The position numbers and the translations under genes are program-made. 64,000 nucleotides of DNA. It comes from Paramoeba atlantica (lineage: Eukaryota; Protista; Discosea). Shown in pieces: positions 948 through 49,655 of the stretch. How positions within the stretch are numbered: position 1 is the stretch's first letter; each line of letters opens with the position of its first letter. Below the pieces are notes generated by a model, which was not told the DNA's origin, ran no database searches, and saw nothing but the letters and a program-made list of their open reading frames with translations. The stretch spans positions 930,001 to 994,000 of the forward strand of contig CDRNVI010000012.1 in assembly GCA_977017575.1 (NCBI GenBank), given 5' to 3'.

Positions 948-2660
948 ATGATGACTGCACCATCTCCCACTGTCGACAGTTCCCTACTCGATGACGCACT
1001 AAGCTCTGCGCTTCATAATTTATACCCCACCGGTCCACCCAAGCGCAATACCGAAAACTTACCTCCCAGCGAGCCCCCAGATAAAGCCATCCCTCGGGTT
1101 AAAATCGCCTCACGACCTCCCCCCCAGGAGGAACCTCCCCACACCTCGCCCCCCGAGACCTGTTGCCTCCACATCCCCACCCTGGAACCCGGAGTCACGG
1201 ACCAAACCCTCTTCGAGGCCTTTGCCCCGTTCCACGCCCTTGACGCCTTTGTCATCCAAGACCCCGCACTCTACACCTTCTCCACCTCCACCAGTCCCCC
1301 CACCTCCCCTCCCCCTCCCACCCCCACCCCACCCGCCGGCATCCTCCTCTTCCGTGACCCCACCACCGCCGCCGCCGCCGCCGAACGCGTCTCCCTCACC
1401 GGCCTCGTCCCCTCCCCCCCCTCCTCCCCCCCTCCCCCCCTCCCCGAGCTCGCGCGCTCCCCCCCCGCCTCCGCCCTCCGCACCCCCCTCGGTTGCGCCC
1501 ACCGCGGCTGCCGCACCCTCCTCTGCATCCTGCTCCACTCCCCGCACCACACCCAGGGCGCCACCGCGGAGGTGCTCTCCGCGCTCGAGGACCCCCGCCA
1601 CGCCGCGGCCATCCTCGCCCACCCGCGGTTCGTCTCCCCCGGGCTCGGCTCCGTCGTCGCGCGCGCCCGCCCCGAGCTCCGCCCCCACCTCTCCCGCGAG
1701 CTCCTCACCACGCTGCTCCGCGAGGACAGCGCCGAGGGCTACGTCGCGGAGGCCATGGCGCTCTGGGGGGAGCTCTTCGCCCGGGGGTGCTTCCGCGGGG
1801 TCAGCACCCCCGGGCGCGTGCTCGAGGCCGTGCTGGAGTCCGGGGTGGGGCTCACCCGGAAACGGGTAAAGGGGTTGTGTGGGTTGGTGGCCCGCACGAC
1901 ACGGGAGGGGTGGGAGGGGGAGGCTGTGGAGGGGGTGCTGCGGAGGTTAAGGGGGCGGAGTGTGGAGCCGGAGGGGAAGGAGGCGTTGGTGGAGCTGTGT
2001 AGGTTGTTGCGGGAGAGGGGGAGGGGGGAGAGGGGGGAGGGATCGAGGGGGGGTGGGAGGGGAACGCATGGGGGTCAAAAGCAAGGGGGGTCGGGGGAGG
2101 GGAAGGAGGGAGGGGGGGTTCATACGCAGCGGAAGCCCTCGTCCTCGTCGTCTTCCTCCTCTGCGGGTGGTGCAACGCCTCTTGCAGCCTCGCTCGGTAC
2201 CCCTGCGGTGGTTGTGCTCACGAACAACACAAAGCTCACCTGCGCGCTGTGCTCCGCAAGGGCAAAGGTACGGTGCACGGAATGTGAAAAGAATTTCTGT
2301 GCGGAATGCCAGAAGTACGACGTCCAGATTCATGATTGCCTGTCCCGTACCGTGTACGTTAGCAAGCTGGACCCCTCCGTAACGGCCTCGGAGTTTCGAG
2401 AAATTCTTGATCGATTTGGCACGGTCGCAAAAGTACGACTCTGTGGTGACCCCACGCAACGCAGCTTGTATGCTTTCATAGAGTTTACAACTGCGGCAGC
2501 AGCGCGTAAACTTCTTCAAGCTGACAAACAAATGATACGGAGCCTTAGTTGGCGGTGTTTACCCGCTCGTCAGCCTATCCATGACCACAACGAAGAAGAT
2601 CAATCCGGTAAGTCACGGATCTGCACCTTTGGACTTTCTTCTGAAGCAGCCGCTCAATGA
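948..2660 (+). CDS. Multi-domain RNA-binding protein: degenerate RRM, MIF4G-like helical region, Cys-rich zinc finger, C-terminal RRM
   Basis: C-terminal RRM TVYVSKLDPSV...KVRLCGDPTQRSLYAFIEF; CALC...CTEC...FCAEC...H finger; WGELF and LCGLV helices. ATG at 948 follows a CAG at ~931-933. Confidence 0.65.
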   Translation: MMTAPSPTVDSSLLDDALSSALHNLYPTGPPKRNTENLPPSEPPDKAIPRVKIASRPPPQEEPPHTSPPETCCLHIPTLEPGVTDQTLFEAFAPFHALDAFVIQDPALYTFSTSTSPPTSPPPPTPTPPAGILLFRDPTTAAAAAERVSLTGLVPSPPSSPPPPLPELARSPPASALRTPLGCAHRGCRTLLCILLHSPHHTQGATAEVLSALEDPRHAAAILAHPRFVSPGLGSVVARARPELRPHLSRELLTTLLREDSAEGYVAEAMALWGELFARGCFRGVSTPGRVLEAVLESGVGLTRKRVKGLCGLVARTTREGWEGEAVEGVLRRLRGRSVEPEGKEALVELCRLLRERGRGERGEGSRGGGRGTHGGQKQGGSGEGKEGGGVHTQRKPSSSSSSSSAGGATPLAASLGTPAVVVLTNNTKLTCALCSARAKVRCTECEKNFCAECQKYDVQIHDCLSRTVYVSKLDPSVTASEFREILDRFGTVAKVRLCGDPTQRSLYAFIEFTTAAAARKLLQADKQMIRSLSWRCLPARQPIHDHNEEDQSGKSRICTFGLSSEAAAQ

Positions 2661-3024
2661 TTCTTGCTGCTACTCAACCTGTGCGAAAGGAAAAAAAACG
2701 AATAGAACACGGCGGGTAGTACATTCGCGCATTTTAATTATCAACGTGAATGATTTTGCCAACAGAGATACAATGATTGGTTATCATCTAAGTTTGGACT
2801 CTCTTGTATTGTTTATGGAATATATTCTACGTATTGATGCATTCATATGCATTTTGTAAAAAAAACAGTAATGCCATTAATACATTATGAACCTTGATCT
2901 TCTGAAAGTTTTTTTCTCACCACTGTGATAGGACTAATCCTTTCACCAGTACATTAGCTAGTCTTTTACGTTAGTGAATTTTATTTGTCTTCAGACACAC
3001 TTTAAGTCTTACACTTTTTTACAC

Positions 3025-3435
3025 ATGACTGCGCAGCATACCACTATGAGTAAATCTTCTAGGGGGAGACCTCGCATGCCCAAAACTCCACCAACGACAA
3101 TGGATGATGATCCTCCAAAGCAAGAAGAGGAGCAATTAGAGGAATCTACGAAACCTGCGCCCAAAAAGCGCTTTGAAATTGTCAAATGGAATGCCGTAGC
3201 ACTATGGTCGTGGGATATTACCGTCGACACCTGTGCCATATGTCGCAATCACATTATGGATTTATGCATTGACTGTCAGGCTAAAGCACAACCCACGACG
3301 CATAACGAGTGTACCGTGGCGTGGGGCAAGTGCAACCATGCTTACCACTTTCACTGCATCTCTAGGTGGCTACGAACCCGCAATGTATGTCCTTTGGATA
3401 ATCGAGACTGGGAATTTAAGAAATACGGCAGGTAA
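3025..3435 (+). CDS. RBX1: RING-box protein 1 (SCF E3 ligase subunit)
   Basis: [38 protein letters not shown]...[32 protein letters not shown]; alternative start at 3046. Confidence 0.97.
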
Positions 3436-3819
3436 AGATCGTCTGAATCATAGCAGTGTGTTTAAAAGTGGTTCCCAGTTTTCTAATTATTCACTTATCA
3501 ATAGTTCTCTAGGGTTAGAGCATCGGATGATATTCAATGTAAGGGTAGACGTTCTCATGTACATGTAAATTGAGGTTATTCCCCTTTTTGGTGAACTTTT
3601 AAGCATTTGCGGCTTTATTTATTCTTGTTGATTCAAAAGCTTTATACTTTTGAAGTGGATTGTCTTGAAGTTTTATTTGCATTCGAACTTATAGTGGAAA
3701 TTTTTCGATGTCCGGTCTTTCGGTATTCACCTTCAGGTCTAGGAAAGCGATTCAGGAACGCTTCCTGCATATACATCACGGTATAGGGAAATAGTAATTC
3801 ATTGGGCTCCTCCGCACTT

Positions 3820-15270: not shown

Positions 15271-15794
15271 GGATAAAAAAACTCAAAATTCCGCGGGGGG
15301 AAGATACATGTATCTTGAAACCACTGTATTAACCCGGAACACGGTACAAATTAAATCATTTACAATGCCGATACCTCAGTTCCTATTTTTTGCTATTCTC
15401 ACAACAGGTTCGTCTCATTATTTTTCTTCTAAACTGTATGATGACAATTTTAACGTGATTGCTGTTCTGTGCAGGAAGAAATGATAACGTATACCCACAA
15501 TTCGCTGAGTTATTTTTTATTTTGTGTACACAGAACATTCACATTCACAAAATCACGTTCATAAAATCAACATAATAAATGTAGCCTGCGCCTGCGCCGT
15601 CTCACCAATTCTTTTTATTTGCATGAGAATATATTTCTAAGGCTTCGTGAGGGTGGATCTCTTATGAATGTATGACAGTGTATTGTAAGTCCCTTGATCG
15701 TAGCACGTATGCTGTATGATAGTATTCGGACTGTTTCACGTAGACGGCTGCGCCTATATTGTTTCCTTCGAGAGAAGCGGGCACCTGCCCACTA

Positions 15795-18700
15795 ATGAAG
15801 CTTCGCTGCCAACTATTTGTACTGGATCATGTATACGAGACAGATTTTGCAGACCAAAAAAGCCATGGAACTACTATACTTAACCGTGTGTCTAGGAAAC
15901 ACGAAATCAGTTCATTGTCCTCTAGCTATCCTGGAAGCGTTTCAGCCCAACAGGCTCGAGTTCCGGTGCTCAGGTGTTTCGGAAGAACATTGAAAGGGGA
16001 AAGCGTATGCGCTCGAATTCACGGAGTTTTTCCTTACATTATGCTTTACTCACCTCTTCAGCACTCGAGAGAGAATGGTTTAGGTGTCTGGGATGACACT
16101 CTTCCCCGCAGGTTTAGCTGCACATTGGAAGATGCTATTAGAGAGCAATACCACATGCCACGAAATAGAAACATTATTCATTCCGTATGTCTTGTAAAGG
16201 GAATGCCTTGCTATGGTTATCATCCTGATTCTGCTATCTTTTTTAAAGTGGAATTCTATCACACCGCATACGTAAAGCGTGCGGTAAATGTTTGCACTCA
16301 AAGCACAGCTGTCGGTGGTATCAAATGGCTCCCACATGAAGCTCACTTGAGTTTTGAGTTACAATTCTTAGTTGACTTTGACCTTGGCGGCATGTCATGG
16401 CTGGACCTGTCTGATTGTAAATCTGCGCAACACAAAACGACTACAGTTGAAATTGAAGTAGACGTGGAGTGTAGAAACGTACAACCCGCTGACACAACTG
16501 TGACACAAGGTCATCGCTTTCAGTCGGTGTCATCTATGAAGTATGTTACGATGGAATTGGAAGAATTCTATAAGAATACTAACGCCACAGATATGTTCTT
16601 ATCGGAGCTGAAAGAAACTGAATCCGCATATCACACAAACAATACTGAAGCATCTTTGATATTATGTGACAACAAGAAGAATCCTGTCAATCGTAACATG
16701 GAGAACATGTTCGAAGAACTCTATTCAGTTTCACATAAAGAAGCAGAAGTCGTGCATTCAACTCCTTCATTATCATCAACGGGTGCCTTCAGTGACAAAG
16801 AGGCTACACCAGAGCCATTAACTTTGGATCTCATTCGCGAGATCGGGCGCACCGGATACAGTCCTGAAGCCATATGTTTTTTAGATGATGATAATAATTC
16901 AATCAAGCGCAATAGTAGTTCATGCTTAGAGCATTCCTCAACGAGCACCGAATTTTACAAACAAGAAAGCGAAGATGTTTCTTTAAGCCCACGTGAAAAT
17001 GTCAATGTACGTCGGGAGCTTGACTTTGAAACTCCACGAAAGGCTCGGAACTCAGGTCGTAAAAATACAAAGGATACATCAGCTCGCCGTCTACAGCATG
17101 ACATTCTGAACTACAACGCTTTTTCTCAGGCAGAGGCTGCAAGTTATTCCATCTCGTGCAGTGGTAAAACGCAAGATTCTCTTGATTCTGTTGAAAGATC
17201 AGAAAGTTCCATTGAATTGTTCTCAGATCGTCCCACTGTGTCTATCGGTCATACCAGTGAATCATATTTCCTTCCAAGGAGAAATGGACGGGACGAAGTG
17301 AGTCATATCGAAAAGCCTGGTACTCCATTACATAGTCCCATGCGCGCTCAAGGAGAGTCAGAGGATTTTATTCTTACTCCAAAACGCTGTGTGCGCTTTG
17401 ACAACTCTTCAAAATCAGCTGGGTTGGGTTCAGTCTCTGAAAAAGAAACATGTTTAAGAACTGACGGCAGTTCAGCCGGACCTTACAAGTCTATGCCCAA
17501 GTCTATTTGCGGTCCTATGAATGTTGGTGTCCCGAAAAGGTGGAAACGCGTCGTTTTTCGTACTTCCGCTCCATCTTGGAAATCTGTTGAAAGTACCCCA
17601 GATTCCATAAACAATCTGCAAGATCCTTTTCCTAGAAATGCATTGCCTACTTCCCTTTCTACTCGATCATCCCAAGCATACAGGGAGTTTCAAGAGATAT
17701 TCAAAAAACAGACTTATTATCCTGAGCATTATGATGTATCATTGAAGACTGAAATTAATTTGACCATATCTGCAAGAAATTTGTCCCCCAGCTGGGCAGA
17801 AATCAAGTCCTCCTATGACACCTGTTCCAGAAGTGCAGAAATGGCTATCCGAGATAGAATACGAACACCAAGTGGAGAAAAGGGAATATATACAGCAATT
17901 TCTGGGATAAAAAATGTGCGCAGCCCTGAGGCTTTTCGGTTGGAAAATTCACGTAAGCATCTTGTTCAATTACGCTGCCTTTATTTCGAGATTATGATAG
18001 GCTCACGAGGTGTCTTACGTGCTGCATGTCTAATCTTTTATAACGCTCAATCGGAGAATATTACCGACTCCGAGATGCATATAATTGGTGCTGGGGCCCG
18101 AAGGTTGCGCACGAAAGGCCAATCACAGTGTCACGTGTGCTGCATTTATCACCATACAGAATTTTTACTTCTGCGTGCCGTGGAGAAAAAGTTGGTCAAT
18201 AGTGACCCCGACCTCATTGCAGGGTGGGAAATACAAAAACGAAGTTTAGGATACTTTATATCAAGATATAAACATGTCATCGGGAGTGAACCTGTACTCG
18301 GAAGATCGATTAGTAATATTACTGATAAAGATGCGGGTTCAGCTGCACCGGATTCAAGGCCAAAATCTAAGGAAATCAAATCAGACGATGACCAGAGTGA
18401 CATAAACCAAATTGATAGAGATGAAAACCGAAAGAAACATAGAGAACATGAAAATTTTCTGTCCGTTTTCGGTTCTGTTTTGAATGCAGCCGAGAAAGAT
18501 GAGTCAAGTGTGTCGTTGGAACACGTATCAACAGACACGTATAAATCTTCGCGAACTCTACATTTACATGGAAGAATACTAATAAACTTATGGAAAGTCT
18601 ACCGGAGCGAACAGAAATCCAAATCATACACACTTCAAAACGCAGCATGGCATTTACTGCGTCGTAGACTTCCTGAACATTCAGACCTAAGTTTGGAGCA

Positions 18701-20930
18701 ATACCTAACGAATGGATCTGTTTCCCAATCCTACTATGCTCTACATCGCCTTTGGGACTACACAATGTGCAGTCTTGAAGTTTGTTTGAAGCTAGATTTC
18801 CTTGTTCGCACCGCTGAAATGGCTAGAATCTACGGTATACAATTCTTTGAAGTCCTCTCCAGAGGATCTCAGTTTCGTGTGGAATCTATCCTGTTGCGAA
18901 TAGCCCGGCGTCAAAACTATGTCGTGCTTTCACCATCAACAGAAGAAGTAGCCAGGCAAAACGATCAAGAGGCGGTACCCTTGGTAATGGAACCTGCCAG
19001 TGGATATTACCGCGACCCCGTTCTTGTGCTAGACTTTCGGTCCCTGTACCCTTCCATAATAATCGCATATAATTTGTGTTACACTACTTGCCTTGGAAAA
19101 TTATCCCGATTGGAAAGTAAAAAATTGGGAGTTTTATCAGGATATCAGACCCCTGTTGATGTTGTTAGATCTATCAAATCTCACATTAGGATTGCACCCA
19201 ACACTACGATGTTTGTCAGTGAGGATCTTCGTAAAGGCATTATTCCAACAGCACTGCGTTCAATACTGGGTACAAGACAGCTTGTCATCAAGGCAAGAAA
19301 AAAAGCTGAAGCTGAGAGCGATCTCATAGGCAGCCGGGTTCTTGAAGCACGTCAACTGGCTCTCAAGCTGCTAGCAAATGTTATTTATGGATATACGGCC
19401 GCGACATGGACAGGGAGGATGCCGTGTTCGGACCTCGCCGACGCAATTGTGCTACTTGCGAGAAACGTGCTGGAACAAACTATTCACAGTGTGAACCAGA
19501 ATGCGGAATGGGGAGCTTTCGTTGTGAGCGGAGACACGGATTCACTGTTCGTACATATAAAAGGGGCAACTCTACCTCGAGCTTTTCAAGTTGCGCACGA
19601 AATAATAGACTTTGTGCAGAATCGCTTTCCTTCTCCAATTGCGTTAAAGCTGGAGAAGGTGTATCTGCCATGTGTCTTGGTCGCTAAGAAGCGTTACGCC
19701 GGATATGCTTACGAATCACTTTCAAGCACTCCGAAACTGGATGTTAAAGGTTTGGAATGCATTCGTCGTGATCAAACCGATGCGACAGCGAATATGCTGA
19801 CTAAAATGTTGCATCTTCTTTTCAAAAATTCGGATATTCAAGCTTTGGAAAGTTACTTTACTAGACAATGCGAAAAACTTTTAAGTGGAAGCGTGACACC
19901 TTGTGATTTGATTCTACGTCAAGAAGTTAAGTTTGGTACCTACCAAGCAGCCAATTTGCCTCCTGCAGCCGAAATTGCCGTACAAGAAGTGAAGAAAGGA
20001 GAAGGAGTTCCAATGTACGGAGAACGGGTGCCATATCTAATTACTCACACCGCGCAGTTTGCCAAACGACTCCGTGACATGTTGGTACATCCGCGCGTAT
20101 ATTTTTCTAGTATAATCAGCAAACCTGATTCCGGACAATTTTTTAGTATCAATATGTTTGACAATCCAGAGACGCAACGACCACCGAATATTCATGTAGA
20201 ATACTATCTGGATAGACAAATCGTACCTGCACTGCAACGCGTTTTTGGCCTAATCAACGTGCACCTTGGCGAATGGCTCTCTAGAGTGCGAAGGTCAGTT
20301 TCTTCTATCCCTTCTATGAAAGCTACTCGTGACACATTAGATGGTTTTTTGCGGCAAGCGAATTGTGTTTCGTGTTCAAAACCGGCCGGTTCTACGGCAG
20401 TACCAATACGGACTGAAGAATTTCCCAAGCGAAGTAAAAAAGTGGTGGCCAAAAAAGCAAATGAGAAAATTGTGAATGAATCCAATGCCTTATGTCAACA
20501 ATGCTTTCAGGATTCTCAGACGACTCTACTAGGCCTCCGTATGCGCCTCAACGCAGTGCAGAAGAGACTTCACAATCAATACATCATTTGCCACCGTTGT
20601 ACAGGGGAAGTCGGGGGACCAGACGAAGTCTCGACGTGTGTGAACACTGAATGTCCAATATCATTTGAGCGTGTTAAATTGCAAGGAAGGTTAAGTTATC
20701 TTCATGAAACTGTTATAGATATAGAGGATCTGTTTAATCCTATAAGATTGAACAACTCTGATGAAACTCATTCAAACTTTAAGGTCGATGCGTTCTATAG
20801 AAAACCTTTTAATAAATTGTCCAACCGGGAGCCCTGCGAAACACTTAGCTCAGTCGAATCCTCAGAGTACATTGATCTTCTTACCCCGCGAGCCTCATCT
20901 CGAGATATAAACGAGATTTATGTCGAATAA
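15795..20930 (+). CDS. REV3: DNA polymerase zeta catalytic subunit
   Basis: Family-B motifs VLDFRSLYPSIIIAYNLCYTT, RQLALKLLANVIYGYTAA, SGDTDSLFV, KKRYAG; REV3-type LSRGSQFRVES and PHEAHL; C-terminal Cys4 clusters. Confidence 0.96.
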   Translation: MKLRCQLFVLDHVYETDFADQKSHGTTILNRVSRKHEISSLSSSYPGSVSAQQARVPVLRCFGRTLKGESVCARIHGVFPYIMLYSPLQHSRENGLGVWDDTLPRRFSCTLEDAIREQYHMPRNRNIIHSVCLVKGMPCYGYHPDSAIFFKVEFYHTAYVKRAVNVCTQSTAVGGIKWLPHEAHLSFELQFLVDFDLGGMSWLDLSDCKSAQHKTTTVEIEVDVECRNVQPADTTVTQGHRFQSVSSMKYVTMELEEFYKNTNATDMFLSELKETESAYHTNNTEASLILCDNKKNPVNRNMENMFEELYSVSHKEAEVVHSTPSLSSTGAFSDKEATPEPLTLDLIREIGRTGYSPEAICFLDDDNNSIKRNSSSCLEHSSTSTEFYKQESEDVSLSPRENVNVRRELDFETPRKARNSGRKNTKDTSARRLQHDILNYNAFSQAEAASYSISCSGKTQDSLDSVERSESSIELFSDRPTVSIGHTSESYFLPRRNGRDEVSHIEKPGTPLHSPMRAQGESEDFILTPKRCVRFDNSSKSAGLGSVSEKETCLRTDGSSAGPYKSMPKSICGPMNVGVPKRWKRVVFRTSAPSWKSVESTPDSINNLQDPFPRNALPTSLSTRSSQAYREFQEIFKKQTYYPEHYDVSLKTEINLTISARNLSPSWAEIKSSYDTCSRSAEMAIRDRIRTPSGEKGIYTAISGIKNVRSPEAFRLENSRKHLVQLRCLYFEIMIGSRGVLRAACLIFYNAQSENITDSEMHIIGAGARRLRTKGQSQCHVCCIYHHTEFLLLRAVEKKLVNSDPDLIAGWEIQKRSLGYFISRYKHVIGSEPVLGRSISNITDKDAGSAAPDSRPKSKEIKSDDDQSDINQIDRDENRKKHREHENFLSVFGSVLNAAEKDESSVSLEHVSTDTYKSSRTLHLHGRILINLWKVYRSEQKSKSYTLQNAAWHLLRRRLPEHSDLSLEQYLTNGSVSQSYYALHRLWDYTMCSLEVCLKLDFLVRTAEMARIYGIQFFEVLSRGSQFRVESILLRIARRQNYVVLSPSTEEVARQNDQEAVPLVMEPASGYYRDPVLVLDFRSLYPSIIIAYNLCYTTCLGKLSRLESKKLGVLSGYQTPVDVVRSIKSHIRIAPNTTMFVSEDLRKGIIPTALRSILGTRQLVIKARKKAEAESDLIGSRVLEARQLALKLLANVIYGYTAATWTGRMPCSDLADAIVLLARNVLEQTIHSVNQNAEWGAFVVSGDTDSLFVHIKGATLPRAFQVAHEIIDFVQNRFPSPIALKLEKVYLPCVLVAKKRYAGYAYESLSSTPKLDVKGLECIRRDQTDATANMLTKMLHLLFKNSDIQALESYFTRQCEKLLSGSVTPCDLILRQEVKFGTYQAANLPPAAEIAVQEVKKGEGVPMYGERVPYLITHTAQFAKRLRDMLVHPRVYFSSIISKPDSGQFFSINMFDNPETQRPPNIHVEYYLDRQIVPALQRVFGLINVHLGEWLSRVRRSVSSIPSMKATRDTLDGFLRQANCVSCSKPAGSTAVPIRTEEFPKRSKKVVAKKANEKIVNESNALCQQCFQDSQTTLLGLRMRLNAVQKRLHNQYIICHRCTGEVGGPDEVSTCVNTECPISFERVKLQGRLSYLHETVIDIEDLFNPIRLNNSDETHSNFKVDAFYRKPFNKLSNREPCETLSSVESSEYIDLLTPRASSRDINEIYVE

Positions 20931-21410
20931 ACATTTTGGTTGAATACCTTTGTTTGACCTTACAGTAAGGGTAATAGGCGGCTTCGGAGCAGTTTTGCTG
21001 CAGCCTTGGTAACATTTGTTGCTAATCGAGGATGTTGTGATGGTTGCGCAACCACTATCAATAGCAACATAAAAGCCAAGTAGAGTGTATTCCCGGTCAA
21101 TGTCCATTATTCCTATCAATGTCCATTATTCCCACCGTGATTGGCACTTCATCCGGATTAGTTTCAAATTATTCTTTGTTGAACGACGCACTGCAGTTTT
21201 GATGTGATTCGTGTCCACACCCATCTGCAATTCTTCGAATACACATCAAGTACTTTCCCTGTACAGTAAGGACGCTTAAAAGCAGCATTTCATCTCTCAT
21301 CATAGCGATTCGTGTTGAGCACACTTTCACGTGTTTTTACTGTCATTTTATTCTTCGTTTTCTATTTTCTCAACTTGTATATTACATGTCCTGATCCTCC
21401 CGTGCTTCAG

Positions 21411-22187
21411 ATGGCACCTCACCGTCCTCACCTAACCTCCTTCTACCTCCCTCTCACCCTCCTCACCTGCCTTGTGCTGTGTGTCGAAGCCCTCACCGTC
21501 CGCACCTTCTTCCCCGGCTCCCTCTCCTCCCCCTCTCTCCTCCTCTTTTTCCTCACCACCTTTGCCACCGTGGTCCTCCTCCTCCTCTTCGGGGTTTTCA
21601 CCCCACGAAAAGACATCTTCCACACGTTAGCCCAACACGACATGGACCACACCAATACACATAGGCCTGGTTTCTCGAACGTTGCGGAGGATCCCGGCAT
21701 GTTGGACCCCGATAGCGTCCCCCCCGCCCCTCCCACGGTGGCCGACCGGGTCCCCGGCGCCACCTACTCCTGTGAGCGCTACACCCGGGACGCTCTCGCG
21801 GAGCTCCTCGGGTCCCAGCCCTACCGCCGCTGGCTGGAGCGCTCCATCCTCCAGGCCAACGTGCAGCGCACGGTGGCGGGACTCCGACACGCCCTGGTGC
21901 GTACCCTCCTGGGGTGCGTGCTCTCGGCCTGGGTGATCCGCGAGGGGGTGGGGAGGGGAGGGGGGGCGGTGGGGGTGGAGGCCGTGGCAGCGTTACTCAC
22001 GGCGTTTCTGGTGGCGCTGCCCCCCCGGGAGGGGGTGGTGGCGGGGTGTGTGGTGGCGGCGAGCGGGGTGTGTTATCTAAGTGAGGGGGAGGAGGCGAGC
22101 TCGCTGCCGATTGTGACCTGTACCACCGTTATATTGCGTATATTGGCGGAGGAGACCTTGGGTGGGTGGAGTTCGTGTGTCGTTTAA
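21411..22187 (+). CDS. Hypothetical multi-pass membrane protein
   Basis: Hydrophobic segments at both ends; ATG at 21411 directly after a pyrimidine tract and CAG. Sequence is strongly skewed (see findings). Confidence 0.55.
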   Translation: MAPHRPHLTSFYLPLTLLTCLVLCVEALTVRTFFPGSLSSPSLLLFFLTTFATVVLLLLFGVFTPRKDIFHTLAQHDMDHTNTHRPGFSNVAEDPGMLDPDSVPPAPPTVADRVPGATYSCERYTRDALAELLGSQPYRRWLERSILQANVQRTVAGLRHALVRTLLGCVLSAWVIREGVGRGGGAVGVEAVAALLTAFLVALPPREGVVAGCVVAASGVCYLSEGEEASSLPIVTCTTVILRILAEETLGGWSSCVV

Positions 22188-22453
22188 GGGCGTGTGTTTA
22201 ATTAGGGTGGGGAAGGGATGGTTGACCTGCGTTGAAGTGCGGGTTTGTCATTCTGTTCTTTTGAAAGGGATAGTACGGAGCTGATAAGAATTTTCTTTTT
22301 TAAAATAGGTACGATATACGCTCTTACGATAGCCACAAACAATCTTTTTTTAAGTAATCTTTTTTTCCTGTCGGCAATACTTTTTCCCGAATGTCAAGCC
22401 TTCGAAAGGCATGCTCATGCGATTTTTTACATTTTTGAAGGAACTTTTGCCTG

Positions 22454-23464: not shown

Positions 23465-23953
23465 ATGCACGTTTTGCTTTTTTCTGTGGTAGCAAAACAG
23501 GCCTATGCGCCTCTACCCTTAGGAACAATAAGTTCCATAAAAAGTGTAGTACTTGATCTGATTTACTCTGTTCATTTCAGAAGATGCTGAGAAGATGTTC
23601 CAGTGACGGAGCGCTCCTCACGTTCGTCAAGCGCTGCATATTAAATCTCCTAGGGATTTTGGAAAGTCTTTCCTTTTCCGCTCCGTTGGTTTCAAGCTTC
23701 CGATTCCGTTGGTTCAAGCTTTCCCACTCCTCGTTTGTTTTACTGCAAGCGTCGAAAAATACTCCACTTACTAACTCTATTGCAGCTTCAGATGCGGTCA
23801 TACTATCATACCGTTTAGGCAAACGTACCTTTCAATTATCCACTTATCCGCTGTAGTGCTCTTAACCTTACTGTATATAGAGAATGTCGCGCGAATAAAG
23901 GAAGCTGTCAAGTAATTTCGACTCTTTCTGTGATTTATAATTCTACCAATAAC

Positions 23954-24532
23954 ATGGCCGATTATGTGCGTCCCGCTAAAGTCCATGGAAGTGCGTTGCC
24001 TCAGGAGTACTTATTAGAAAAAATACTGCAAGACGTGAAGGTAGTACCACTCAAAATACCAGTAAGATCTCCTTTTTGTTGGAGTACCGAGACACCTGCG
24101 TGTAAATGGCGTGGTGTGACTTGTGACGCACAGGGTATAGTGACAAAAATCTACTGGGGCTGCTGTAACTTAAACGGTGAATTGCACTGGGAGTTCTTGC
24201 CTAAAACGCTCATTACATTCAACGCGCGTTCTAATGAGCTCCGCGGTATCGTAGAGCTCATCGATCTGCCTCCTGGATTAGAAAGCTTCAGTGCCTCTTA
24301 TAACTTACATGGAGGAACGCCTGATTTACGTGAACTGCCTCTCACCATGAAGGAATTGTGGCTAGAATACAACTGCTTTGAGGGGCGAGTGGATCTGGAT
24401 GCCCTTCCCAAATCTATGAAGGCTTTACATCTTGAAGAAAATCAAGATCTGAGTGGTCAAATTGATGTCTCAAAACTTCCTCCAAAACTGTATTACAACA
24501 TACGTAGCACGAATATTACGATGTTGCATTGA
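23954..24532 (+). CDS. Short leucine-rich-repeat family protein (copy 1)
   Basis: TPACKWRGVTC cap followed by LP..L..L.L..N.F.G.VDL repeats; N-terminal PAKVHGSALPQEY resembles the copy at 38417. Confidence 0.85.
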   Translation: MADYVRPAKVHGSALPQEYLLEKILQDVKVVPLKIPVRSPFCWSTETPACKWRGVTCDAQGIVTKIYWGCCNLNGELHWEFLPKTLITFNARSNELRGIVELIDLPPGLESFSASYNLHGGTPDLRELPLTMKELWLEYNCFEGRVDLDALPKSMKALHLEENQDLSGQIDVSKLPPKLYYNIRSTNITMLH

Positions 24533-24569: not shown

Positions 24570-24690
24570 ATTTTCTTTTTTAGGCTCTTCGTTAAACGCG
24601 GCGGTAGTTTTCAACGCGAAGCGCGCAGCATGAGTGACTTCTAAGTTGAAAGCAACCACCGCGTTTAACGAAGAGCCTAAAAAAGAAAAT
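24570..24690. repeat. 121-bp foldback palindrome
   Basis: 31-bp perfect arms (24570-24600 / 24660-24690) extending imperfectly to ~46 bp; homologous to 43738-43908 in the opposite orientation. Confidence 0.9.
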
Positions 24691-25269: not shown

Positions 25270-25354
25270 CCCCCCCCCCCCCTGGACCCCCCCCCTGGAC
25301 CCCCCCCCTGGAGCCCCCCCCCTGGACCCCCCCCCTGGACCCCCCCCCATGGAC
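25270..25354 (-). repeat. (C9TGGA)x6 tandem array; G-quadruplex-prone on the minus strand
   Basis: Six C-runs of 9-13 nt separated by TGGA. Confidence 0.9.
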
Positions 25355-25757
25355 CTCCCATTTTTTTCAAATTTTTTTTTCAGTTTTGGACCACCGGAGC
25401 CCCCTTTTATATTTTTTTCTTCTATTATATTACTGTGTTCCTCTTTATATTTTCACTGTTTTTGTTCACTTTTTTTTCAATAATCGAGTGTAGAGCGGTA
25501 GTTTTACAACCACCGCAACATTCAATAAATACGAATTCAATGTGTATAGATTGTATATGAATACAATATGTATTGGCCTTCAAAAATGGCGGCATAAATA
25601 GAATAATAAATTAGAATAGCTTGAATGTAGCGAGGTCAAAGCACTCTCCTCCGAGGATCCGGATCTTCCCTAATTTCATACATTGGTTTTGTTTTTTGAG
25701 CTAATAGTCCTTTACAAGTGTTTTTATAAGGAAATTCTGTTGCGTTCAAGATTTTTT

Positions 25758-27626: not shown

Positions 27627-27888
27627 AAAAGCAAAGTGAAGCACACTTGTGGGAGCAACTCGTTATTGTGTATATGCACACTGTACATTTCTTTTGGCAG
27701 GTGGGTTGGGTTCTGTATATCACCACCCTCTAGCCTAGAATGTGGGCGGTATCTAGACTAGATACTCATGCAAGGCACTATTGATATAAAAAAACAACAC
27801 AAAACCGTTCCAAAGCTTTCTTTCTCCTTCCTCCTTTTTTCCTTTTCCTTTTCTTCCTCTCTCCCTCACCACCACCCCCTTCACCACC

Positions 27889-28518
27889 ATGCTTCTTCTC
27901 GCCCTCTCCCTCGACTCCACCACCCCCTCCCCCTCCCACCCCCTCCGCCCCTCCAAACTCCACACCTCCACCCTCCCCCCCGCCCACCACCTTGCCCGTT
28001 TCACGGCCAACCTCTCCCACCCCCACCCCTCCTGGGACCCCGCCCTCCCGCTGTGGCAGTGGCACCACGTGCTCTGTGGGCGTGCGGGCCAGCCCGTGGC
28101 CCTGGCCTGGGCCTCCCTCGGCCTCCGCGGCACCCCGCGCTGGGCCGCCCTCCCCCTGCTCCCCTCCCTCCAGGGCGTGGAGCTCACCCACAATGCGCTA
28201 CGGGGCGAGATCCCCTGGGGGGAACTCCCGGAGTCCCTCCACACGTTACTGCTCGCCCACAACCGGTTTACCGGGCCGTTGTGGTGCCTGGGGGCAGGAG
28301 GGGGAAGACTCCCGGGCAAGCTGCAGATGCTTGATCTCGCCCATAATGGGTTTAGTGGGGAGGTGGATCTCTGTGGGGACGCCCTTCCGGGGTCTCTGCA
28401 GGAGATGGATTTAAGTGGGAATAGCGGGTTGTGGGGGAAAGTGGTGGTGTATGCACTGCCGCCGAGGTTGAGGAATTATGATTGGGAGGGGACAGGGATT
28501 GTGGAGTGTTATGATTGA
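27889..28518 (+). CDS. Short LRR family protein (copy 2), inside a C-to-G skew island
   Basis: WDPALPLWQW..V.C cap; LPESLHTLLLAHNRFTG, LPGKLQMLDLAHNGFSGEVDL, LPGSLQEMDLSGN. Confidence 0.8.
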   Translation: MLLLALSLDSTTPSPSHPLRPSKLHTSTLPPAHHLARFTANLSHPHPSWDPALPLWQWHHVLCGRAGQPVALAWASLGLRGTPRWAALPLLPSLQGVELTHNALRGEIPWGELPESLHTLLLAHNRFTGPLWCLGAGGGRLPGKLQMLDLAHNGFSGEVDLCGDALPGSLQEMDLSGNSGLWGKVVVYALPPRLRNYDWEGTGIVECYD

Positions 28519-28768
28519 ACAAGGGGAGTCTTTGGGTAGCGGATCAAAGGCTTGTAAAATATCGTTTGTATGATAGTGCCCGATCGAACGCTTGTAATGT
28601 ATAAAGATTAAAGATTTGAATCAACAGTTTGTGTCATACAAGAAGGTTCATCACATGGGGTCAGTAGGTTAACCGGCTTTTTCATACGCGTACATGAATA
28701 ACTTTGTTGCAAAAAGTATTTTTTGTGTTAGAAGAATTTTAGGATTAGTACATTCTATTGAAGAACAC

Positions 28769-31687: not shown

Positions 31688-32401
31688 ATGTACCGCATTT
31701 CACGCTACTGGTTTGCTGCCACCTCCGCCGTACATGCCACACAAAACCGAAAAGTTCACAAACCCCAAACTCCCCCGGAAGCCGAATCCGCAAGCCAACA
31801 CGGCCCTTCCCCCCACCCCAACCCCAACGCCAAAACACCGGCCGGAACCGAAAGCGGTCTGCAGGCCCCGAAGAAGCCTCGGCGGTTTACGATTATGACC
31901 ACAACCACCAAGGCGGTTCATGTGCACTACCGGAATATGCTCTCCCTGTGGTGGTGGTACGTGGCCCGGGGCCCACGCTACCTGGCCGTCGCGACATTTA
32001 CCTTTATTGCCAGCGCACTTATCTACCGTGCAAAAAAGGGACAGCAGAAATCCGCCGAGTGTGTAATGCTCGGGGAGAACTTACTCGATGAACGCACAAA
32101 GGAGCTGCTCGGGGATATTGAGAAACTTCGTGAGAAAGACCCGGTGAGACTGGAGAAGGAGGCGAACACATTTCACGAACAGTTTTGGAAGACCCGGGCG
32201 CTTGCCGTGACGGAGGATCGCCACCACCGACGGTCGCTCGAGAAGAAACAAATCCAGGCGATCTCCGCGAGTACCGGTACGGATATGTCGGAATGGATGG
32301 AGGCAAAGGTGAAGGACACAAAGGAGAAGGAGGTGGCACGACGTACGCATGACTATATTCAAGGCTTTCATACCCACCTGAAGGTGCGGAGATTGATTTA
32401 G
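31688..32401 (+). CDS. Hypothetical single-TM protein, possibly mitochondrial
   Basis: MYRISRYWF basic N-terminus; one TM segment (YLAVATFTFIASALIY); coiled-coil-like C-terminus. Confidence 0.6.
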   Translation: MYRISRYWFAATSAVHATQNRKVHKPQTPPEAESASQHGPSPHPNPNAKTPAGTESGLQAPKKPRRFTIMTTTTKAVHVHYRNMLSLWWWYVARGPRYLAVATFTFIASALIYRAKKGQQKSAECVMLGENLLDERTKELLGDIEKLREKDPVRLEKEANTFHEQFWKTRALAVTEDRHHRRSLEKKQIQAISASTGTDMSEWMEAKVKDTKEKEVARRTHDYIQGFHTHLKVRRLI

Positions 32402-36996: not shown

Positions 36997-37238
36997 CCCC
37001 CACTTATAGTGCCGTTTTGACAAAAATGTTCGAAAAATGACTAATTGTTTTTGTCCAAAAAGTACAGTAAACATGGTGGAAATTTCTAACATTGAGTGGC
37101 TTCAAAGTTGAAAACAGCCACCACGTTTAACTAAGCCACTCAATGTTAGAAATTTCCACCATGTTTACTGTACTTTTTGGACAAAAACAATTAGTCATTT
37201 TTCGAACATTTTCGTCAAAACGGCACTATAAGTGGGGG
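36997..37238. repeat. Near-perfect 242-bp palindrome
   Basis: ~106-bp arms (36997-37102 / 37133-37238) with one mismatch; 30-nt spacer. Confidence 0.92.
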
Positions 37239-37251
37239 GGCTATAAGAATA

Positions 37252-37429
37252 ACCGAGGGCAAAGTGGACGAGGGAGTACCATTAGTTTAGGTGCGGCATT
37301 TTCCACAGAAAAAACGGCATCTCTACCTTTTTAGGCGCTTGTCTTCATGCCATAAGGGAGATACCGTTTTTCCTGCGGAAACTGCCGCACCTAAACTATT
37401 GGTACTCCCTCGTCCACTTTGCCCTGGGT
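37252..37429. mobile_element. 178-bp foldback MITE
   Basis: ~70-bp imperfect arms starting TA|ACC(G/C)AGGGCAAAGTGGACGAGGGAGTACCA; TA on both sides. Confidence 0.8.
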
Positions 37430-43737: not shown

Positions 43738-43908
43738 AATATTATTCATGATCTTTTGGCGGTTTTTCTTTTTTAGGCTCTTCGTTAAACGCGGTGGTTG
43801 TTTTCAACTTAGAAGTCACTCATGCTGCGCACTTCGCGTTGAAAACTACCTTCGCGTTTAACGAAGAGCCTAAAAAAGAAAAATCGCCAAAAGATCATGA
43901 ATAATATT
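43738..43908. repeat. 171-bp foldback palindrome (same family as 24570-24690)
   Basis: 56-bp arms (43738-43793 / 43853-43908) with one mismatch; the central part is the reverse complement of the 24570 copy. Confidence 0.9.
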
Positions 43909-44178: not shown

Positions 44179-44304
44179 GTGCCATCATGTATTTCCCCTT
44201 TTAACCTCCTTGGTTACCGCAAAAAAACATTGGGGCTAATATGCCCCTACCCCCCGGCATTATGCCCCCATTACGGTGAGCGAATGTACCCCCCCTTAAT
44301 AAAT

Positions 44305-44386
44305 ATACATAGGGTACATTAGGAACATATAGGGTACTATAGGGAACATATAGGGTACATATAGGGTGCTATTTATATAGGGTACA
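44305..44386 (+). repeat. Degenerate 10-11-bp tandem repeat with a TAGGG core
   Basis: ATAGGG at ~44309, 44329, 44339, 44350, 44361, 44377, with (T/A)ACAT-type linkers. Confidence 0.7.
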
Positions 44387-44936
44387 CTACCCCCCCTATA
44401 CATTAAGAGGGGGTGCTTTTTGGGTGAGAAAGGACCTTTTTTGTTCATGAGTACGTTGACTTTCAGCACATCCAACCCCGAAACCACGCCATTCGCTCCC
44501 TCGCAACCGCCCTCACCTCGCCCAGCCACCCCCACCCTCCCAAACACCCCCTCCCTCCTCCGACGACCCTCCCGAGCCAATTCTTTGTTACTGGGGGTCA
44601 GCCAAAAAAGGGTCAAATCCTTGTTACTGGGGGGGTCTAGTACTATGGGGGTCTAAGGTAGTCTCCGCACTCTCTCCCTACACACTTCCTGTACCCCCTG
44701 TACCCCCCACCTGGACCCGAGTTGCACCCCCTGGAACCCCCACCCGGATCCTCCAGCGAACTCCATAGCCGAAAAAACTCCAAGTATCATTGCCATTGGT
44801 TTCTCTTGGGACCTGACTGGGTTTGCATTTTACTGGTTTCAGCCCTCTTACACTGGTACCAGAGGATGTCAATCAGAACACGTGGAAATGTTCTCTCGAT
44901 GCGAGCCATAAATATTATAGCGATGTGAGTTGTATT

Positions 44937-45017
44937 GGCACTATGGGCAAAGGCACTATGGGCAAAGGCACTACGGGCAAAGGCACTATGGGCAAAGGCA
45001 CTATGGGCAAAGGCATT
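44937..45017 (+). repeat. 15-bp tandem repeat (GGCACTATGGGCAAA)x5 plus a partial unit
   Basis: Direct reading; one unit has CTAC instead of CTAT; the array abuts the Merlin TSD. Confidence 0.95.
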
Positions 45018-45025
45018 CAAAATGC

Positions 45026-46727
45026 GGTCAAAAGGGCATATTTTTGTACCAATTTTTGTTTTCAATGAAATTTCTACCCGATGAGTCGAAAGAAATTCTT
45101 AAACTTACAGAAACATTTTATCTTTCCTCATTAATAATGTACAGAAATATTACAAATGCTTGGGTTAAATTAAAGCAAAATTCGCCTTTTCTTAAAAAAA
45201 AGTTTTTTTTTGCGGTTTTCAAAAATTTTGTGCAATGAAATCAACACTTTCCGATTCTAGTTTTCTACTTAAATACTTGGACAAGACTTATAAATGAATA
45301 TAATGACAATGATCTTGTAGATTCTGTAGGATGCGCAGCATTACATCGCCGCCATTGTACCGTAGGCTGCCGTTGCATTTTTCAGCATTGGCTTGCACAC
45401 GATCTGCCCGTTTATCCTTTTTCCTTCCTAATAGGTTTCCTTCTCGATTAAGTCTCTTCTTCGCCACCGAATTCGCGCACTCCACAGTGTTCGTGTGGAC
45501 ACCCTCTTCTGTTATCCATTCTCGGCGGTGGTTCACGCTATTCCACTTATAGCGTCCACCAAGGCGGATATTGTGACGCGACCCGTCGGTCCATGTTCGT
45601 GTCCTCCCCCCGCTCGCCAGATCTTCAATTCGAGGAAGTAACGTGCTCGCCTTACGATCAGGTACAACTTCCATGAACATTTCAGATAATTTGCTCGCTC
45701 GAGTAGTCACAGCAATTGTCTGTGCAACTTCTGTACCATCATCTCGCACCCGTCTTGCACCATGAGAACCTCGGTGACGTTTCCGTACAGAAAAATATGT
45801 CTCATCGCATTGCATTGAACCAACGCTGCCGCGATTCCTGATACGTCGGCGAACATGAGCTGTGGCCATCATGCCATCCATCCATTGCCTTAGAGACACA
45901 ATGGTCTGCTGACTAAGTTCTGTCTCCGCTGCCGAATCCGCATGTCGTCCACCACGAGCGTACAAAATTATGTACTTTAATGTTTGCTTTGCACTTCTTT
46001 GTGCCCTTCCAGGTACGAGAGGTCCTAAGGTGGCGTACATTCCTTTGCATTTTTTAGTACACCTCCATTTCCCGTCAGTTCTATAGTAGAGTCATAGTAT
46101 AGGGCGCCTTGTGTAGTCTTTTATAACATACAACCTTCTGAGCCACCAACTTATGGGTTCTTAACCACTCCCTGCATTTCGATTCGCTCCACACAGAAAC
46201 TTTGCTCAAAGTGAGATTTCCTCGGCAAGCGAAGCCGTTGCATCCTTTACAGGGCATGTGTTGGAGTTGAGGAGTCTGAATCTAAAAAATGAATCTGAAA
46301 AATAAAGGAAAAAGTGGAAATACGTGATACGATACAAAAAAAGATATAATTATTTTTAGTGGGGACGACTTTCCTTTTTTTTTTCAAAAAAGGCGAATTT
46401 TGCTTTAATTTCACCAATGCTTGCATTGCGGAATTGCAATCACCTTTCACCTTCGCATGGCGCTGAAAAGTTTTCGGAAATTCTAGGAAGGAATGTTCAT
46501 CCGGTAAGCAAATCGTAGGATTTTACTCACTCAAATATATCACACCCTTCGCAGTAGAAGCTCATATTGTTGCGCGAAATAGAATTTTAAAGGTGATGCT
46601 AACTTTCTTTTAAAAACGGTTCCTTTGTAATGAAGGATTCGAATAAATTATTTAAATTTATTCAAATATTGCAAAAATCGATTTCGGTCAATCCGAAGAG
46701 TTGGTACAAAAATATGCCCTTTTCACC
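45026..46727 (-). mobile_element. Merlin (IS1016/IS1595-like) DNA transposon, 1702 bp
   Basis: 27-bp TIRs GGTCAAAAGGGCATATTTTTGTACCAA (45026-45052) / TTGGTACAAAAATATGCCCTTTTCACC (46701-46727), one mismatch; 8-bp TSD CAAAATGC at 45018-25 and 46728-35; extra subterminal IR ~45160-45203 / 46375-46415. Confidence 0.93.
45288..46257 (-). pseudogene. Merlin transposase with one frameshift near 46082-46090
   Basis: DDE core QCDETYF / WTDG / VNH...HTNTVE. An upstream 58-codon frame (ATG 46257: ...CREWLRTHKL...C...H) joins via a +1 shift to LYYRTDGKWRCTKKC and the 250-aa ORF. Confidence 0.85.
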
Positions 46728-47895: not shown

Positions 47896-48173
47896 TGAAG
47901 AAAAAATATCTCTAGAAGATTGAAACATAGGACGGTAAAGCTGCAGAAGTCGTTGCAAAACAAAATACAAGTGTTTTGTTTTGCCCCTTAAGAATTTTGT
48001 AGAATATTAAGAAACAAACTTTTGGTATAAATTATAACTTTTTCATTTTATAAATGCAACACTCTTATCCATTATCACTCTAACACAACTTTTTCTTGTC
48101 TTGATCAACTACACACAATCTGTTACTCTGATCCCTCTCTCCTTGCTTATCTTCCTTTTTCTCTCTTCTATCC

Positions 48174-49655
48174 ATGAGCCACACCCCTTCCCCCCAACAC
48201 TCCCCCAGTACCCAACCCACCACCTCTCCCACTCTCTCCCCCACCCTCCTTCACCCCCCACCCCGCACCCCCACCGCCCCAGTCCCCGGCTTTCCCCATC
48301 CCCCTTCCTTCTTTCACCACCACCACCCCACCCTCCCCGAACTCCCCGGCCACCCTCCACCCCCTCCTCGTGATCCCCCACCCCCTCCACGTCCCCCCAC
48401 CCTCGGCGGCACCGACCCGATGAAATACAAAACCGCAATGTGCCGCAACTGGGAGACCACCGGACAGTGCCACTTCCGCGGGTGTACCTTCGCCCATGGC
48501 CGCGCGGAGCTCCGACCCCTACCCCCACGTCCCGGCGTAGTCGACACAACGCCCCACAGCCTCCCCACCGATAGCCCGTTAACCCACCTCCCTACTCCCC
48601 CCTCCCACTCTACCCCATTTGTGGAGTGTGGGCCCTTTCCCCCCTCTACCGTACATCTCATCGACACACTCCCTACCACCCGGACCCACTCCCCCACAAC
48701 TGTACCCAGTACCGGGAGTAGTCCCAGTCACAGTAGCAGTAACAGCAACCGTACCGTAGTCCACAGTAGTGCCGCCACAGCTCCAGCAACAGCCACAACA
48801 ACAACAACCGGCCTGGGATCGACCACCCTATGGGGAAGGCCTACCGTACCCGCGGGCTCGACGCCTGCTGTAGTCGGGGTCCTCGGGGTCCCACGTAGTG
48901 GACCTCACGTCGTGCCGTTACAACCGACGAACTACCCCCACACACAAACAACAAACGAACGGGGGCGTACTACGGCGACGACACCTCGAGGAGTAGCGGG
49001 AGCCATGGGGTATGGGGTAGGGGGAACGACAGGGGGAGTGGTGTCCCGGTCCCCGACCCCTACGCCTACGTTGGTGGCCCCGGTTTATTCGTCGGGGGGA
49101 GCGGGAGGAGGGGTTGCTCCAGGGGGTAGTGGTGTGCCTCGGAGTCGAGGAGGGGGGATGACCGCAACAGAGGAGTTGCTGCGGGAACTTGCGAACGCGA
49201 TCCACCGGGATCATGAGACCTTGCGTGGGGTGCAGGACACCGCACGTGGTTTGGAGAAGGTGTTGCAGGCGGAGAGGGTGGAGAGGGCGGCGCAGCGAGT
49301 GGAGGCGGAGAGGAGTGCGATGGAGCTCGCACGGGTGAAACAAAGGGTGGTGGAGTTGGAGCAGAGGTTGGTGGGGGTGACGGAGGGGGAGGAGGCAGAC
49401 GGGTCGGGGGTGAAGTTGCCGGGTACGGAACGGCACAGCCCTGTGGAGGGGCGCTCGGGTACTCCGACGAGTCGGGATACGATGCGACCTGGGGATAAGT
49501 CCACTCCGCTGTTTTCCGAGACTATGAGCATGCAGGAGCGGGCACTCACGCCGCGTGAAATATCTCCGTCAGATGAAACGGCGGCAGAGTGTGCGTCCAG
49601 CGAGGATCAAAAACTCCGGGAATTGCTAAGCGTCCTGCAGGTAGGCTCCTTGTAG
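48174..49655 (+). CDS. CCCH zinc-finger RNA-binding protein with C-terminal coiled coil
   Basis: KYKTAMCRNWETTGQCHFRGCTFAHGRAELR; heptad-rich region LAN...LEQRL. Confidence 0.82.
   Translation: MSHTPSPQHSPSTQPTTSPTLSPTLLHPPPRTPTAPVPGFPHPPSFFHHHHPTLPELPGHPPPPPRDPPPPPRPPTLGGTDPMKYKTAMCRNWETTGQCHFRGCTFAHGRAELRPLPPRPGVVDTTPHSLPTDSPLTHLPTPPSHSTPFVECGPFPPSTVHLIDTLPTTRTHSPTTVPSTGSSPSHSSSNSNRTVVHSSAATAPATATTTTTGLGSTTLWGRPTVPAGSTPAVVGVLGVPRSGPHVVPLQPTNYPHTQTTNERGRTTATTPRGVAGAMGYGVGGTTGGVVSRSPTPTPTLVAPVYSSGGAGGGVAPGGSGVPRSRGGGMTATEELLRELANAIHRDHETLRGVQDTARGLEKVLQAERVERAAQRVEAERSAMELARVKQRVVELEQRLVGVTEGEEADGSGVKLPGTERHSPVEGRSGTPTSRDTMRPGDKSTPLFSETMSMQERALTPREISPSDETAAECASSEDQKLRELLSVLQVGSL

Follow-up and report, generated by a model that had tools for sequence, protein, structure and literature searches.

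The GC skew of a DNA strand changes sign at replication origins in bacteria and archaea, and yeast and human origins show a weak mutational asymmetry. At mammalian CpG-island promoters, the non-template strand is G-rich downstream, R-loops form and the skew flips where the promoter is bidirectional. In Trypanosoma brucei, RNA polymerase II (Pol II) start regions carry strand-specific G/T-rich elements (PMC5579346). Here we describe islands of another kind in a 64,000-nt stretch of DNA deposited as Paramoeba atlantica (assembly GCA_977017575.1, contig CDRNVI010000012.1, positions 930,001 to 994,000; hereafter the window). In each island the + strand turns from strongly C-rich to strongly G-rich inside a single gene. 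We found no description of such islands in full-text searches of the literature, including the genome papers on Bodo saltans (PMC2621209), Perkinsela (PMC5601477) and free-living prokinetoplastids (PMC7859406) and a paper on trypanosomatid assemblies (PMC10441713).

The original prediction held that the window contains four GC-rich islands, each with a C-rich left part and a G-rich right part. Two scans of the whole window located all four where they had been placed. With 200-nt windows, taking at least 40% C followed by at least 40% G as the criterion, the C-rich and G-rich parts spanned 951-1850 and 1701-2200 in island 1, 21351-21900 and 21801-22250 in island 2, 27751-28300 and 28251-28550 in island 3, and 48051-48800 and 48951-49550 in island 4. 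A finer detector (100-nt window, 38% C or G threshold, runs of at least 150 nt) gave the edges used below. The letters of the islands consist of C runs and then G runs within open reading frames on the + strand, which carries every long reading frame in the window except that of a transposase at 45288-46040. The window as a whole has 44.6% G+C, compared with 43.1% outside the islands, and the observed/expected ratio of CpG is 1.00 in the background and 0.49-0.73 in the islands. A mirror-skew score reached 306, 199, 220 and 191 at islands 1 to 4, and peaks of the opposite sign arose solely at the outer edges of the islands themselves.

Island 1 lies in a gene for a B-box and RRM protein (948-2660). 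In its C-half (1002-1738, at least 38% C per 100 nt), third codon positions are up to 88% C, with the peak at 1323-1547, and 0-8% G. In its G-half (1740-2145) they are up to 88% G, with the peak at 1923-1997, and between these peaks (1548-1847) A+T at third positions falls to 0%. The G-half stops short of the part encoding the conserved B-box/RRM region, where Pfam RRM_1 covers residues 469-532 of the product. In island 2, the C-half (21406-21892) sets in 5 nt before the start codon of a gene at 21411-22187 and the G-half (21898-22239) ends 52 nt past its stop codon, with third positions peaking at 88% C and 68% G. Island 3 occupies a gene for a leucine-rich repeat (LRR) protein (27889-28518): its C-half (27830-28233) begins 59 nt upstream of the gene and its G-half (28267-28516) ends at the stop codon, with peaks of 84% C and 64% G. 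Island 4 belongs to a gene for a CCCH zinc-finger protein (48174-49655); the C-half (48144-48900) begins 30 nt upstream, the G-half (48986-49493) is followed by a tail of G-ending codons that continues to about 49600, and third positions peak at 72% C and 80% G. In the island cores, A+T makes up 0-13% of third positions, compared with 50-73% in an orthologue.

Walking along the European Nucleotide Archive (ENA) contig by gene look-ups, and merging it with the window, gave 103,298 nt (103 kb) of one co-directional gene array. In these 103 kb the detector found seven G-runs, each directly after a C-run. Four of the pairs are the islands of the window; the other three lie at L008 6546-7971, at L004 16883-17890 in a PhyH-family gene (island 5) and at L005 20006-20727 in the gene for mitochondrial ribosomal protein L15 (island 6). 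Thus, the predicted constancy of order held in seven of seven islands, and neither the reverse order nor a G-run without a preceding C-run was seen anywhere in the 103 kb. We found no minus-strand gene array there; in any case, comparing polarity with gene strand is uninformative because the reverse complement of C-then-G is again C-then-G. The constant order is nevertheless a real invariant, since G-then-C would be the distinct alternative. Two further C-runs, without a G partner, are of another nature: one lies in a transposon, and a short one lies upstream of island 6. At about 1 per 15 kb, islands affect about one gene in eight, and the seven genes include five with unrelated functions (RNA-binding, LRR, zinc finger, dioxygenase and mitochondrial ribosomal protein) and two of unknown function. 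The C-half of island 5 includes a long AAC/AAT-rich, poly-asparagine stretch (L004 17075-17220, about 6.1 kb past the end of the window) that consists almost entirely of A and C, and depletion of G persists even in this low-complexity sequence.

The islands are bounded by genes. All seven are confined to one coding sequence plus or minus 80 nt, and none begins mid-gene, is centred in intergenic DNA or straddles two genes. On the left, the edges are 34, 54, 5, 59, 30, 154 and 33 nt away from a start codon. On the right, four edges are 22, 52, 2 and 31 nt away from a stop codon, and the other three fall within the gene. When the same seven lengths were placed at random in 20,000 trials, agreement of this kind was rare (P<5e-5 for the left edges, 3e-4 for the four right edges and <5e-5 for confinement to a single gene). 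Island length (687-1426 nt) tracks gene length (630-1713 nt), and the four genes of more than 1100 amino acids in the 103 kb contain no island. These gene boundaries do not depend on the islands: the starts of the L15 gene and of gene 948-2660 coincide with those of their orthologues, and the island 3 LRR gene aligns end to end with an island-free paralogue of the same length at 23930-24532. The skew had also been predicted to extend outside coding sequence, which it does over a short distance. In the 80 nt upstream of islands 3 and 4, C amounts to 34-47%, compared with 19 +/- 5% (maximum 31%) in other genes, with 47% C and 1% G at island 3; in the 80 nt downstream of islands 2 and 3, G amounts to 29-39% (39% at island 2), compared with 20 +/- 5% in other genes. 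Past 80 nt, the flanks are at background. We found no motif common to the flip points or centres beyond composition, and no tRNA or other RNA genes in the window.

We then compared the island genes with their relatives. The protein encoded by 948-2660 aligns along its full length with four orthologues (P0001-P0004), and the genes of two relatives (L001, L002) have ordinary composition and no island. The L15 protein is 63-90% identical to that of the closest relative inside island 6. At the codons of conserved residues, 63-70% of the first 90 codons end in C in this genome and, across most of codons 90-240, 57-75% end in G, whereas 50-73% of the closest relative's L15 codons overall end in A or T. 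The PhyH gene of island 5 shows the same codon-ending behaviour, and its orthologue has no island; this orthologue (L010) is about 100 amino acids shorter and may be truncated. Low-complexity segments shared with orthologues would have spoken for a property of the proteins, and the orthologues of all three island genes compared (948-2660, L15 and PhyH) are island-free. Because synonymous sites of conserved residues are affected, orthologues lack islands and non-coding flanks are affected up to 80 nt, these results support the conclusion, already part of the original prediction, that the signal acts on DNA rather than on protein or codon preference.

The proteins have nonetheless shifted in composition. 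Relative to its orthologue, the 948-2660 product has gone from 12 to 37 prolines in the C-half and from 8 to 27 glycines in the G-half. Faster protein evolution within the island was considered and rejected: over ungapped columns, the distance of this protein to outgroups does not exceed that of its orthologue, and constrained residues have therefore resisted the pressure. A substitution spectrum drawn from the same orthologue comparison was also rejected. The differences run from all three other bases to C and then to G, but silent sites are saturated, so that these counts show the end state rather than the events and only mirror composition. In 61.8 kb of three related genomes, no island with a score of at least 90 was found where 4.2 were expected at the density seen in this genome (Poisson P=0.015), and none turned up in another 21 kb of environmental contigs from kinetoplastids that are more distant, covering three loci from a metagenome scan. 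By this comparison of sequences, the islands are derived in this lineage.

The two halves are near-exact complements of one another. Fourfold-degenerate sites contain A, C, G and T in proportions of.09,.67,.12 and.13 in the C-halves and.11,.16,.63 and.10 in the G-halves, and each half contains about as much A as T, whether fourfold sites or all sites are counted. The absence of A/T skew argues against single-strand deamination, which would raise T together with G, and for a process specific to C versus G; a keto (G+T) skew arising from deamination was rejected on this ground. Among twofold-degenerate codons, 77% of NNY codons end in C in the C-half, compared with 36% in the G-half, where 89% of NNR codons end in G. 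Homopolymer slippage was rejected as well, as runs of at least 7 numbered 19 against 19.1 expected from independent point substitutions and the longest was 8.

Motifs of the quadruplex type follow the same geometry. On the + strand they occur only in G-halves, save one at 25158 beside a 13-nt repeat; on the - strand most are in C-halves, and the remainder comprises single hits inside islands and clusters in two unrelated patches at 25.3 kb and 44.5 kb. Complementarity between halves beyond that due to composition was not found in five of the seven islands, which stayed within the range of 60 shuffles; the best local complementarity exceeded all 60 shuffles only in the island labelled I0 (17.5 vs 16.0), and I5 tied the maximum (15.0). 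Inverted repeats and fold-back templated correction were rejected because the inverted matches are of low complexity only and complementarity is mostly at shuffle level. In predicted folds of islands 2 and 3, about half of the pairs join the two halves, with energies 2.7-4.4 standard deviations below those of within-half shuffles.

A weak form of the pattern is present in ordinary genes. In 50 non-island genes, third-position skew starts at -0.05 at the 5′ end and reaches +0.12 at the 3′ end, 32 of the 50 have a higher value in their second half (P=0.014), and the size of the gradient correlates with G+C content at third positions (GC3; rho 0.36, P=0.011). No such gradient was seen in the genes of relatives (23/46, P=0.32). 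The graded skew of non-island genes makes the islands look like the extreme of a genome-wide process at the level of genes. Two genes of the window are weak cases. At 31688-32401 (+), a weak or intermediate case with a GC3 of 0.66, third-position skew is -0.27 over the first half and +0.37 over the second, and a RAD23-like gene at 51060-52292 (+), with a GC3 of 0.56, has a mirror-skew score of 87 at 51958.

Independent data contain the same islands, so that the question of an assembly artefact, raised with the original prediction, could be addressed directly. In run X2, a 3.6-kb contig crosses 47000-50264 with 4 differences from the window. Contigs of run X3 cover 48158-49000 and 49025-50108, thereby including both the extreme C and the extreme G parts of island 4, and run X5, from a separate study in 2015, includes its inner parts. 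In the short-read contig sets of runs X4 and X5, extreme C and G stretches are absent. Over islands 2 and 3, the window agrees at 99.98% identity with the ENA assembly ERZ24900291 of the same organism (contig ctg4015l, 263 kb). This assembly is not simply the same file as the window because the two differ in structure near 37100: between about 37093-37427 of the window and L003 17568-17996 146 nt are inverted and about 330 nt are extra, probably where the two assemblies treated a repeat or hairpin-bearing element in different ways. Throughout 0.7-1.4 kb of island the reading frames remain open, and the encoded proteins can be aligned from one end to the other with orthologues or with an equally long paralogue. 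ENA gene calls fragment islands 1, 3, 5 and 6 into spurious short pieces (L003, L004, L005, L007 and L008), some assigned to the wrong strand (as with the - strand calls L003 8351-8764 over island 3 and L004 17057-17386 over island 5), and island genes are therefore largely missing from protein databases.

Run X3 also bears on the organism and the transcript. Its read depth is 688 on an L7Ae ribosomal protein gene, about 45-54 on the neighbours and about 0-2 in intergenic DNA, which is the behaviour of an RNA library. In one X3 contig, 19 additional letters, ending in CAGTTTCTGTAC plus one C, are attached at window position 50295. The sequence CAGTTTCTGTAC is the kinetoplastid spliced-leader core and is contained in the Perkinsela leader primer (PMC5601477); position 50295 is a trans-splice acceptor. 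The tail of the leader in this contig is unlike published Perkinsela and trypanosome leaders. From the RNA-like depth and the spliced-leader core, it follows that island 4 is part of a mature mRNA and that the DNA comes from a kinetoplastid with trans-splicing. Among named relatives, the prokinetoplastids PhM-4 (70% identity) and PhF-6 (58%) are closest, followed by Trypanoplasma (61%) and trypanosomatids (59%). High expression or codon optimization was rejected as the cause, as the depth on island gene 4 is an ordinary 45-54, compared with 688 on the neighbouring ribosomal protein gene.

Taken together, the bias pushes sites of all kinds to C on the strand read toward an intragenic point and to G on reading away from it. 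It is rotationally symmetric and graded among genes, with reading frames and conserved residues kept by purifying selection, and it is bounded by one transcript unit, from approximately the splice acceptor or 5′ untranslated region (UTR) to at most 80 nt past the stop codon. These facts call for a process that treats the strands oppositely on either side of an intragenic point and is specific to C and G, that acts on DNA or on something copied back into DNA, and that halts where AT-rich intergenic DNA begins or where the transcript unit ends, with a strength that varies by gene. One possible explanation, which we favour tentatively and rate at somewhat below an even chance, is that the islands are footprints of a lineage-specific, DNA-level substitution bias in which an exposed or structured G-gaining strand is copied by a dCMP-inserting bypass activity in a self-reinforcing manner. 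The G-gaining strand, which would be the coding strand on the 3′ side and its complement on the 5′ side, would repeatedly be single-stranded or folded, either displaced by an RNA-DNA hybrid or copied as a G-quadruplex template. Bypass synthesis inserting dCMP across it would tend to turn any base there into G, more G would give more structure, and the cycle might continue until AT-rich intergenic DNA is reached. The REV1-like C insertion named in the original prediction is compatible with a pure G/C skew that lacks A/T skew.

Several points weigh against this explanation. No known process explains a mid-gene switch of the G-gaining strand, and the 5′ half is the weakest link, as it would need antisense transcription or another form of template-strand exposure. 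Neighbouring genes are unaffected, so a gene-specific trigger is required. The nearest orthologues are saturated at silent sites, which leaves only end-state composition measurable, only four polymorphisms fall in island 4, and selection on mRNA would yield identical boundaries. The symmetry is also imperfect: C-halves are longer than G-halves (mean 597 vs 402 nt, in six of seven islands, P=0.03), a difference that may depend on gene direction. In a more general form, we consider it possible, although clearly short of an even chance, that a gene-targeted, self-reinforcing process of hypermutation or biased repair is rewriting transcript units, about 12% of genes strongly and the rest weakly, and that it arose recently in one early-branching kinetoplastid lineage.

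The strand geometry of the islands fits the lagging-strand template at an origin as well as the non-template strand at a divergent transcription start, and both had to be weighed. The original prediction had leaned towards fixed origins about 20 kb apart, with the flip as the initiation point and a strand-asymmetric error, such as C insertion opposite the lagging-strand template, building the two halves. Established fork geometry exposes the lagging-strand template on both sides in a way that gives C-then-G and mirror-symmetric halves, seven islands per 103 kb would be a plausible density of eukaryotic origins, and no asymmetry of transcription direction would be needed. However, the gene-bounded placement described above, with edges at start and stop codons (P<5e-5) and length tracking gene length, is not what origins predict, since an asymmetry set by fork direction would ignore gene boundaries and reach well past 1 kb, and neither is the lack of islands that are centred in intergenic DNA, begin mid-gene or lie in the four longest genes. 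The missing centre motif, the absence of T/A skew that sets the islands apart from classical replication skew, and the weak version in ordinary genes that rises with GC3 also count against origins, as does the fact that replication skews elsewhere are weak and span whole replication units. We therefore do not favour this explanation and regard it as unlikely. Internal bidirectional Pol II start regions, resembling the divergent ones of trypanosomes in which the coding strand is G/T-rich in each direction, are distinctly unlikely: a divergent pair would indeed read C-rich and then G-rich on the + strand, but the islands lie inside coding sequences of a one-way array at about 1 per 15 kb, are gene-bounded, and are enriched in G and not in T.

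Selection might instead act on the mRNA or on the structure of gene DNA: in some transcripts, a 5′ half poor in G and a 3′ half poor in C could be advantageous because translation or stability is controlled through folding, quadruplexes, pairing over long distances or the binding of proteins. Transcription here is polycistronic, so expression is controlled post-transcriptionally; the islands match the transcript or coding unit and spill over within probable UTRs; island sequence is present in RNA contigs; the folds of islands 2 and 3 pair the two halves with the low energies given above; and GC3 correlates with the gradient. By contrast, the bias is saturating and alters amino acids (proline 37 vs 12 and glycine 27 vs 8 against the orthologue), it affects genes of five unrelated functions and two unknown, its exact mirror composition has no obvious use in RNA, the halves show no specific complementarity beyond composition, and island gene 4 is not highly expressed. 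On balance, we think selection of this kind improbable as the source of the islands. Grass genes show 5′-3′ GC gradients, and three of the islands likewise start from the 5′ end and weaken within the gene. Recombination hotspots with GC-biased gene conversion, in which the flip would reflect resection polarity around a double-strand break, could in this respect, and by AT-to-GC enrichment that is greatest at silent sites and a size of about 1 kb like that of a conversion tract, resemble what we see. Yet conversion is blind to G versus C and cannot make a skew of 0.8-0.9. Moreover, established resection polarity does not fit: 5′-to-3′ resection leaves the + strand left of the break, where damage and C insertion would give a G-rich left half, so that the 3′ overhangs of a resected break predict the opposite order. 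We rate this possibility as very unlikely. An artefact of assembly, sequencing or annotation, or chance low-complexity proline/glycine coding, is hardly credible. Some short-read contig sets (X4 and X5) do lack the extreme C and G stretches, and GC-rich DNA is open in many frames, so that reading-frame edges could partly follow island edges; but full islands are found in X2, X3 and the second assembly, frames stay open for 0.7-1.4 kb with end-to-end alignment of the proteins, and the effect is strongest at third codon positions.

Other features of the window are set apart from the islands. The C patch at 25274-25359 is not an island and consists of 6.5 copies of a 13-nt tandem unit (nine C, then TGGA); the array is flanked by long T/A runs, is apparently non-coding and mimics a C-half with no G partner. 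The C patch at 44474-44758 is not an island either and lies inside a transposon. This element, within about 44200-46100, has a 250-amino-acid frame (45288-46040, - strand, opposite to all its neighbours) with an ISXO2/IS1595 (Merlin-type) transposase domain, and is flanked by an 11/21-nt repeat (44309-44367), a 15-nt tandem repeat of 5.3 copies (44937-45015) and the C-rich 44474-44758. A look-up with this transposase, intended to lead to further loci, led back to this locus alone. Bodo saltans and Perkinsela are the only kinetoplastids from which Merlin elements have been reported (PMC8101967). A repeat of about 119 nt occurs in both orientations, at 43764-43882 and 24570-24690, and is 84-97% identical to L003 5144-5262; it may be a terminal repeat belonging to a small mobile element. 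Between islands 1 and 2, an intact gene of ordinary composition (15759-20930, about 1710-1720 amino acids) encodes the DNA polymerase zeta catalytic subunit (REV3), and we take its position next to a possible footprint of translesion synthesis as coincidence.

If the islands are mutational, they would be a natural experiment in which the polarity of strand-specific DNA synthesis or repair is written into hundreds to thousands of genes. They would then offer a readable map of differential strand treatment and show, in an extreme case, how much pressure on composition proteins can tolerate. Gene-targeted hypermutation or biased repair, if true, would be a new kind of mutational drive whose unit of action is the gene. 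If the islands are selected, they would point to an unknown layer of post-transcriptional control in organisms without gene-by-gene transcriptional control. In practice, gene finders mis-call island genes, short-read data under-cover the islands, and tests of codon usage, horizontal transfer or phylogeny that are based on composition are misled by them.

The islands share features with several known systems and differ from each of them. Like the skew switch at replication origins, they change sign at a point, with C to the left, G to the right and mirror-image sides, but they span 0.7-1.4 kb rather than a whole replication unit, saturate with third positions at up to 88% C or G, are GC-enriching, have no T/A skew and are confined to single genes. 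The Pol II start elements of trypanosomes come from the same phylogenetic group, have G runs on the strand that points away from the centre and, as a divergent pair, would also read C-then-G (PMC5579346); those regions, however, lie between arrays, extend over several kilobases and are G+T-rich and non-coding, whereas the islands are intragenic in a co-directional array, enriched in G only and spaced at about 1 per 15 kb. Mammalian CpG-island promoters are likewise about 1 kb of GC-rich sequence in an AT-leaning genome. Here, by contrast, the background is not CpG-depleted (1.0) and the islands are lower (0.5-0.7), and they are coding, gene-bounded and far stronger in skew. REV1-type dCMP insertion at abasic sites or structured G-rich templates would give a pure gain of C from any base with no A/T skew, as at the fourfold sites of the islands; it is known as a scattered mutational signature and not as a builder of kilobase domains, and its likeness to the islands rests on end-state composition. 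Genes shaped by GC-biased conversion in grasses, and hyper-GC genes in birds, resemble the islands in their gene-scale shift from AT to GC, their maximum at silent sites and their altered amino acids, and some islands fade towards the 3′ end. Those genes, however, have no strand switch between C and G, and it is this switch that defines the islands.

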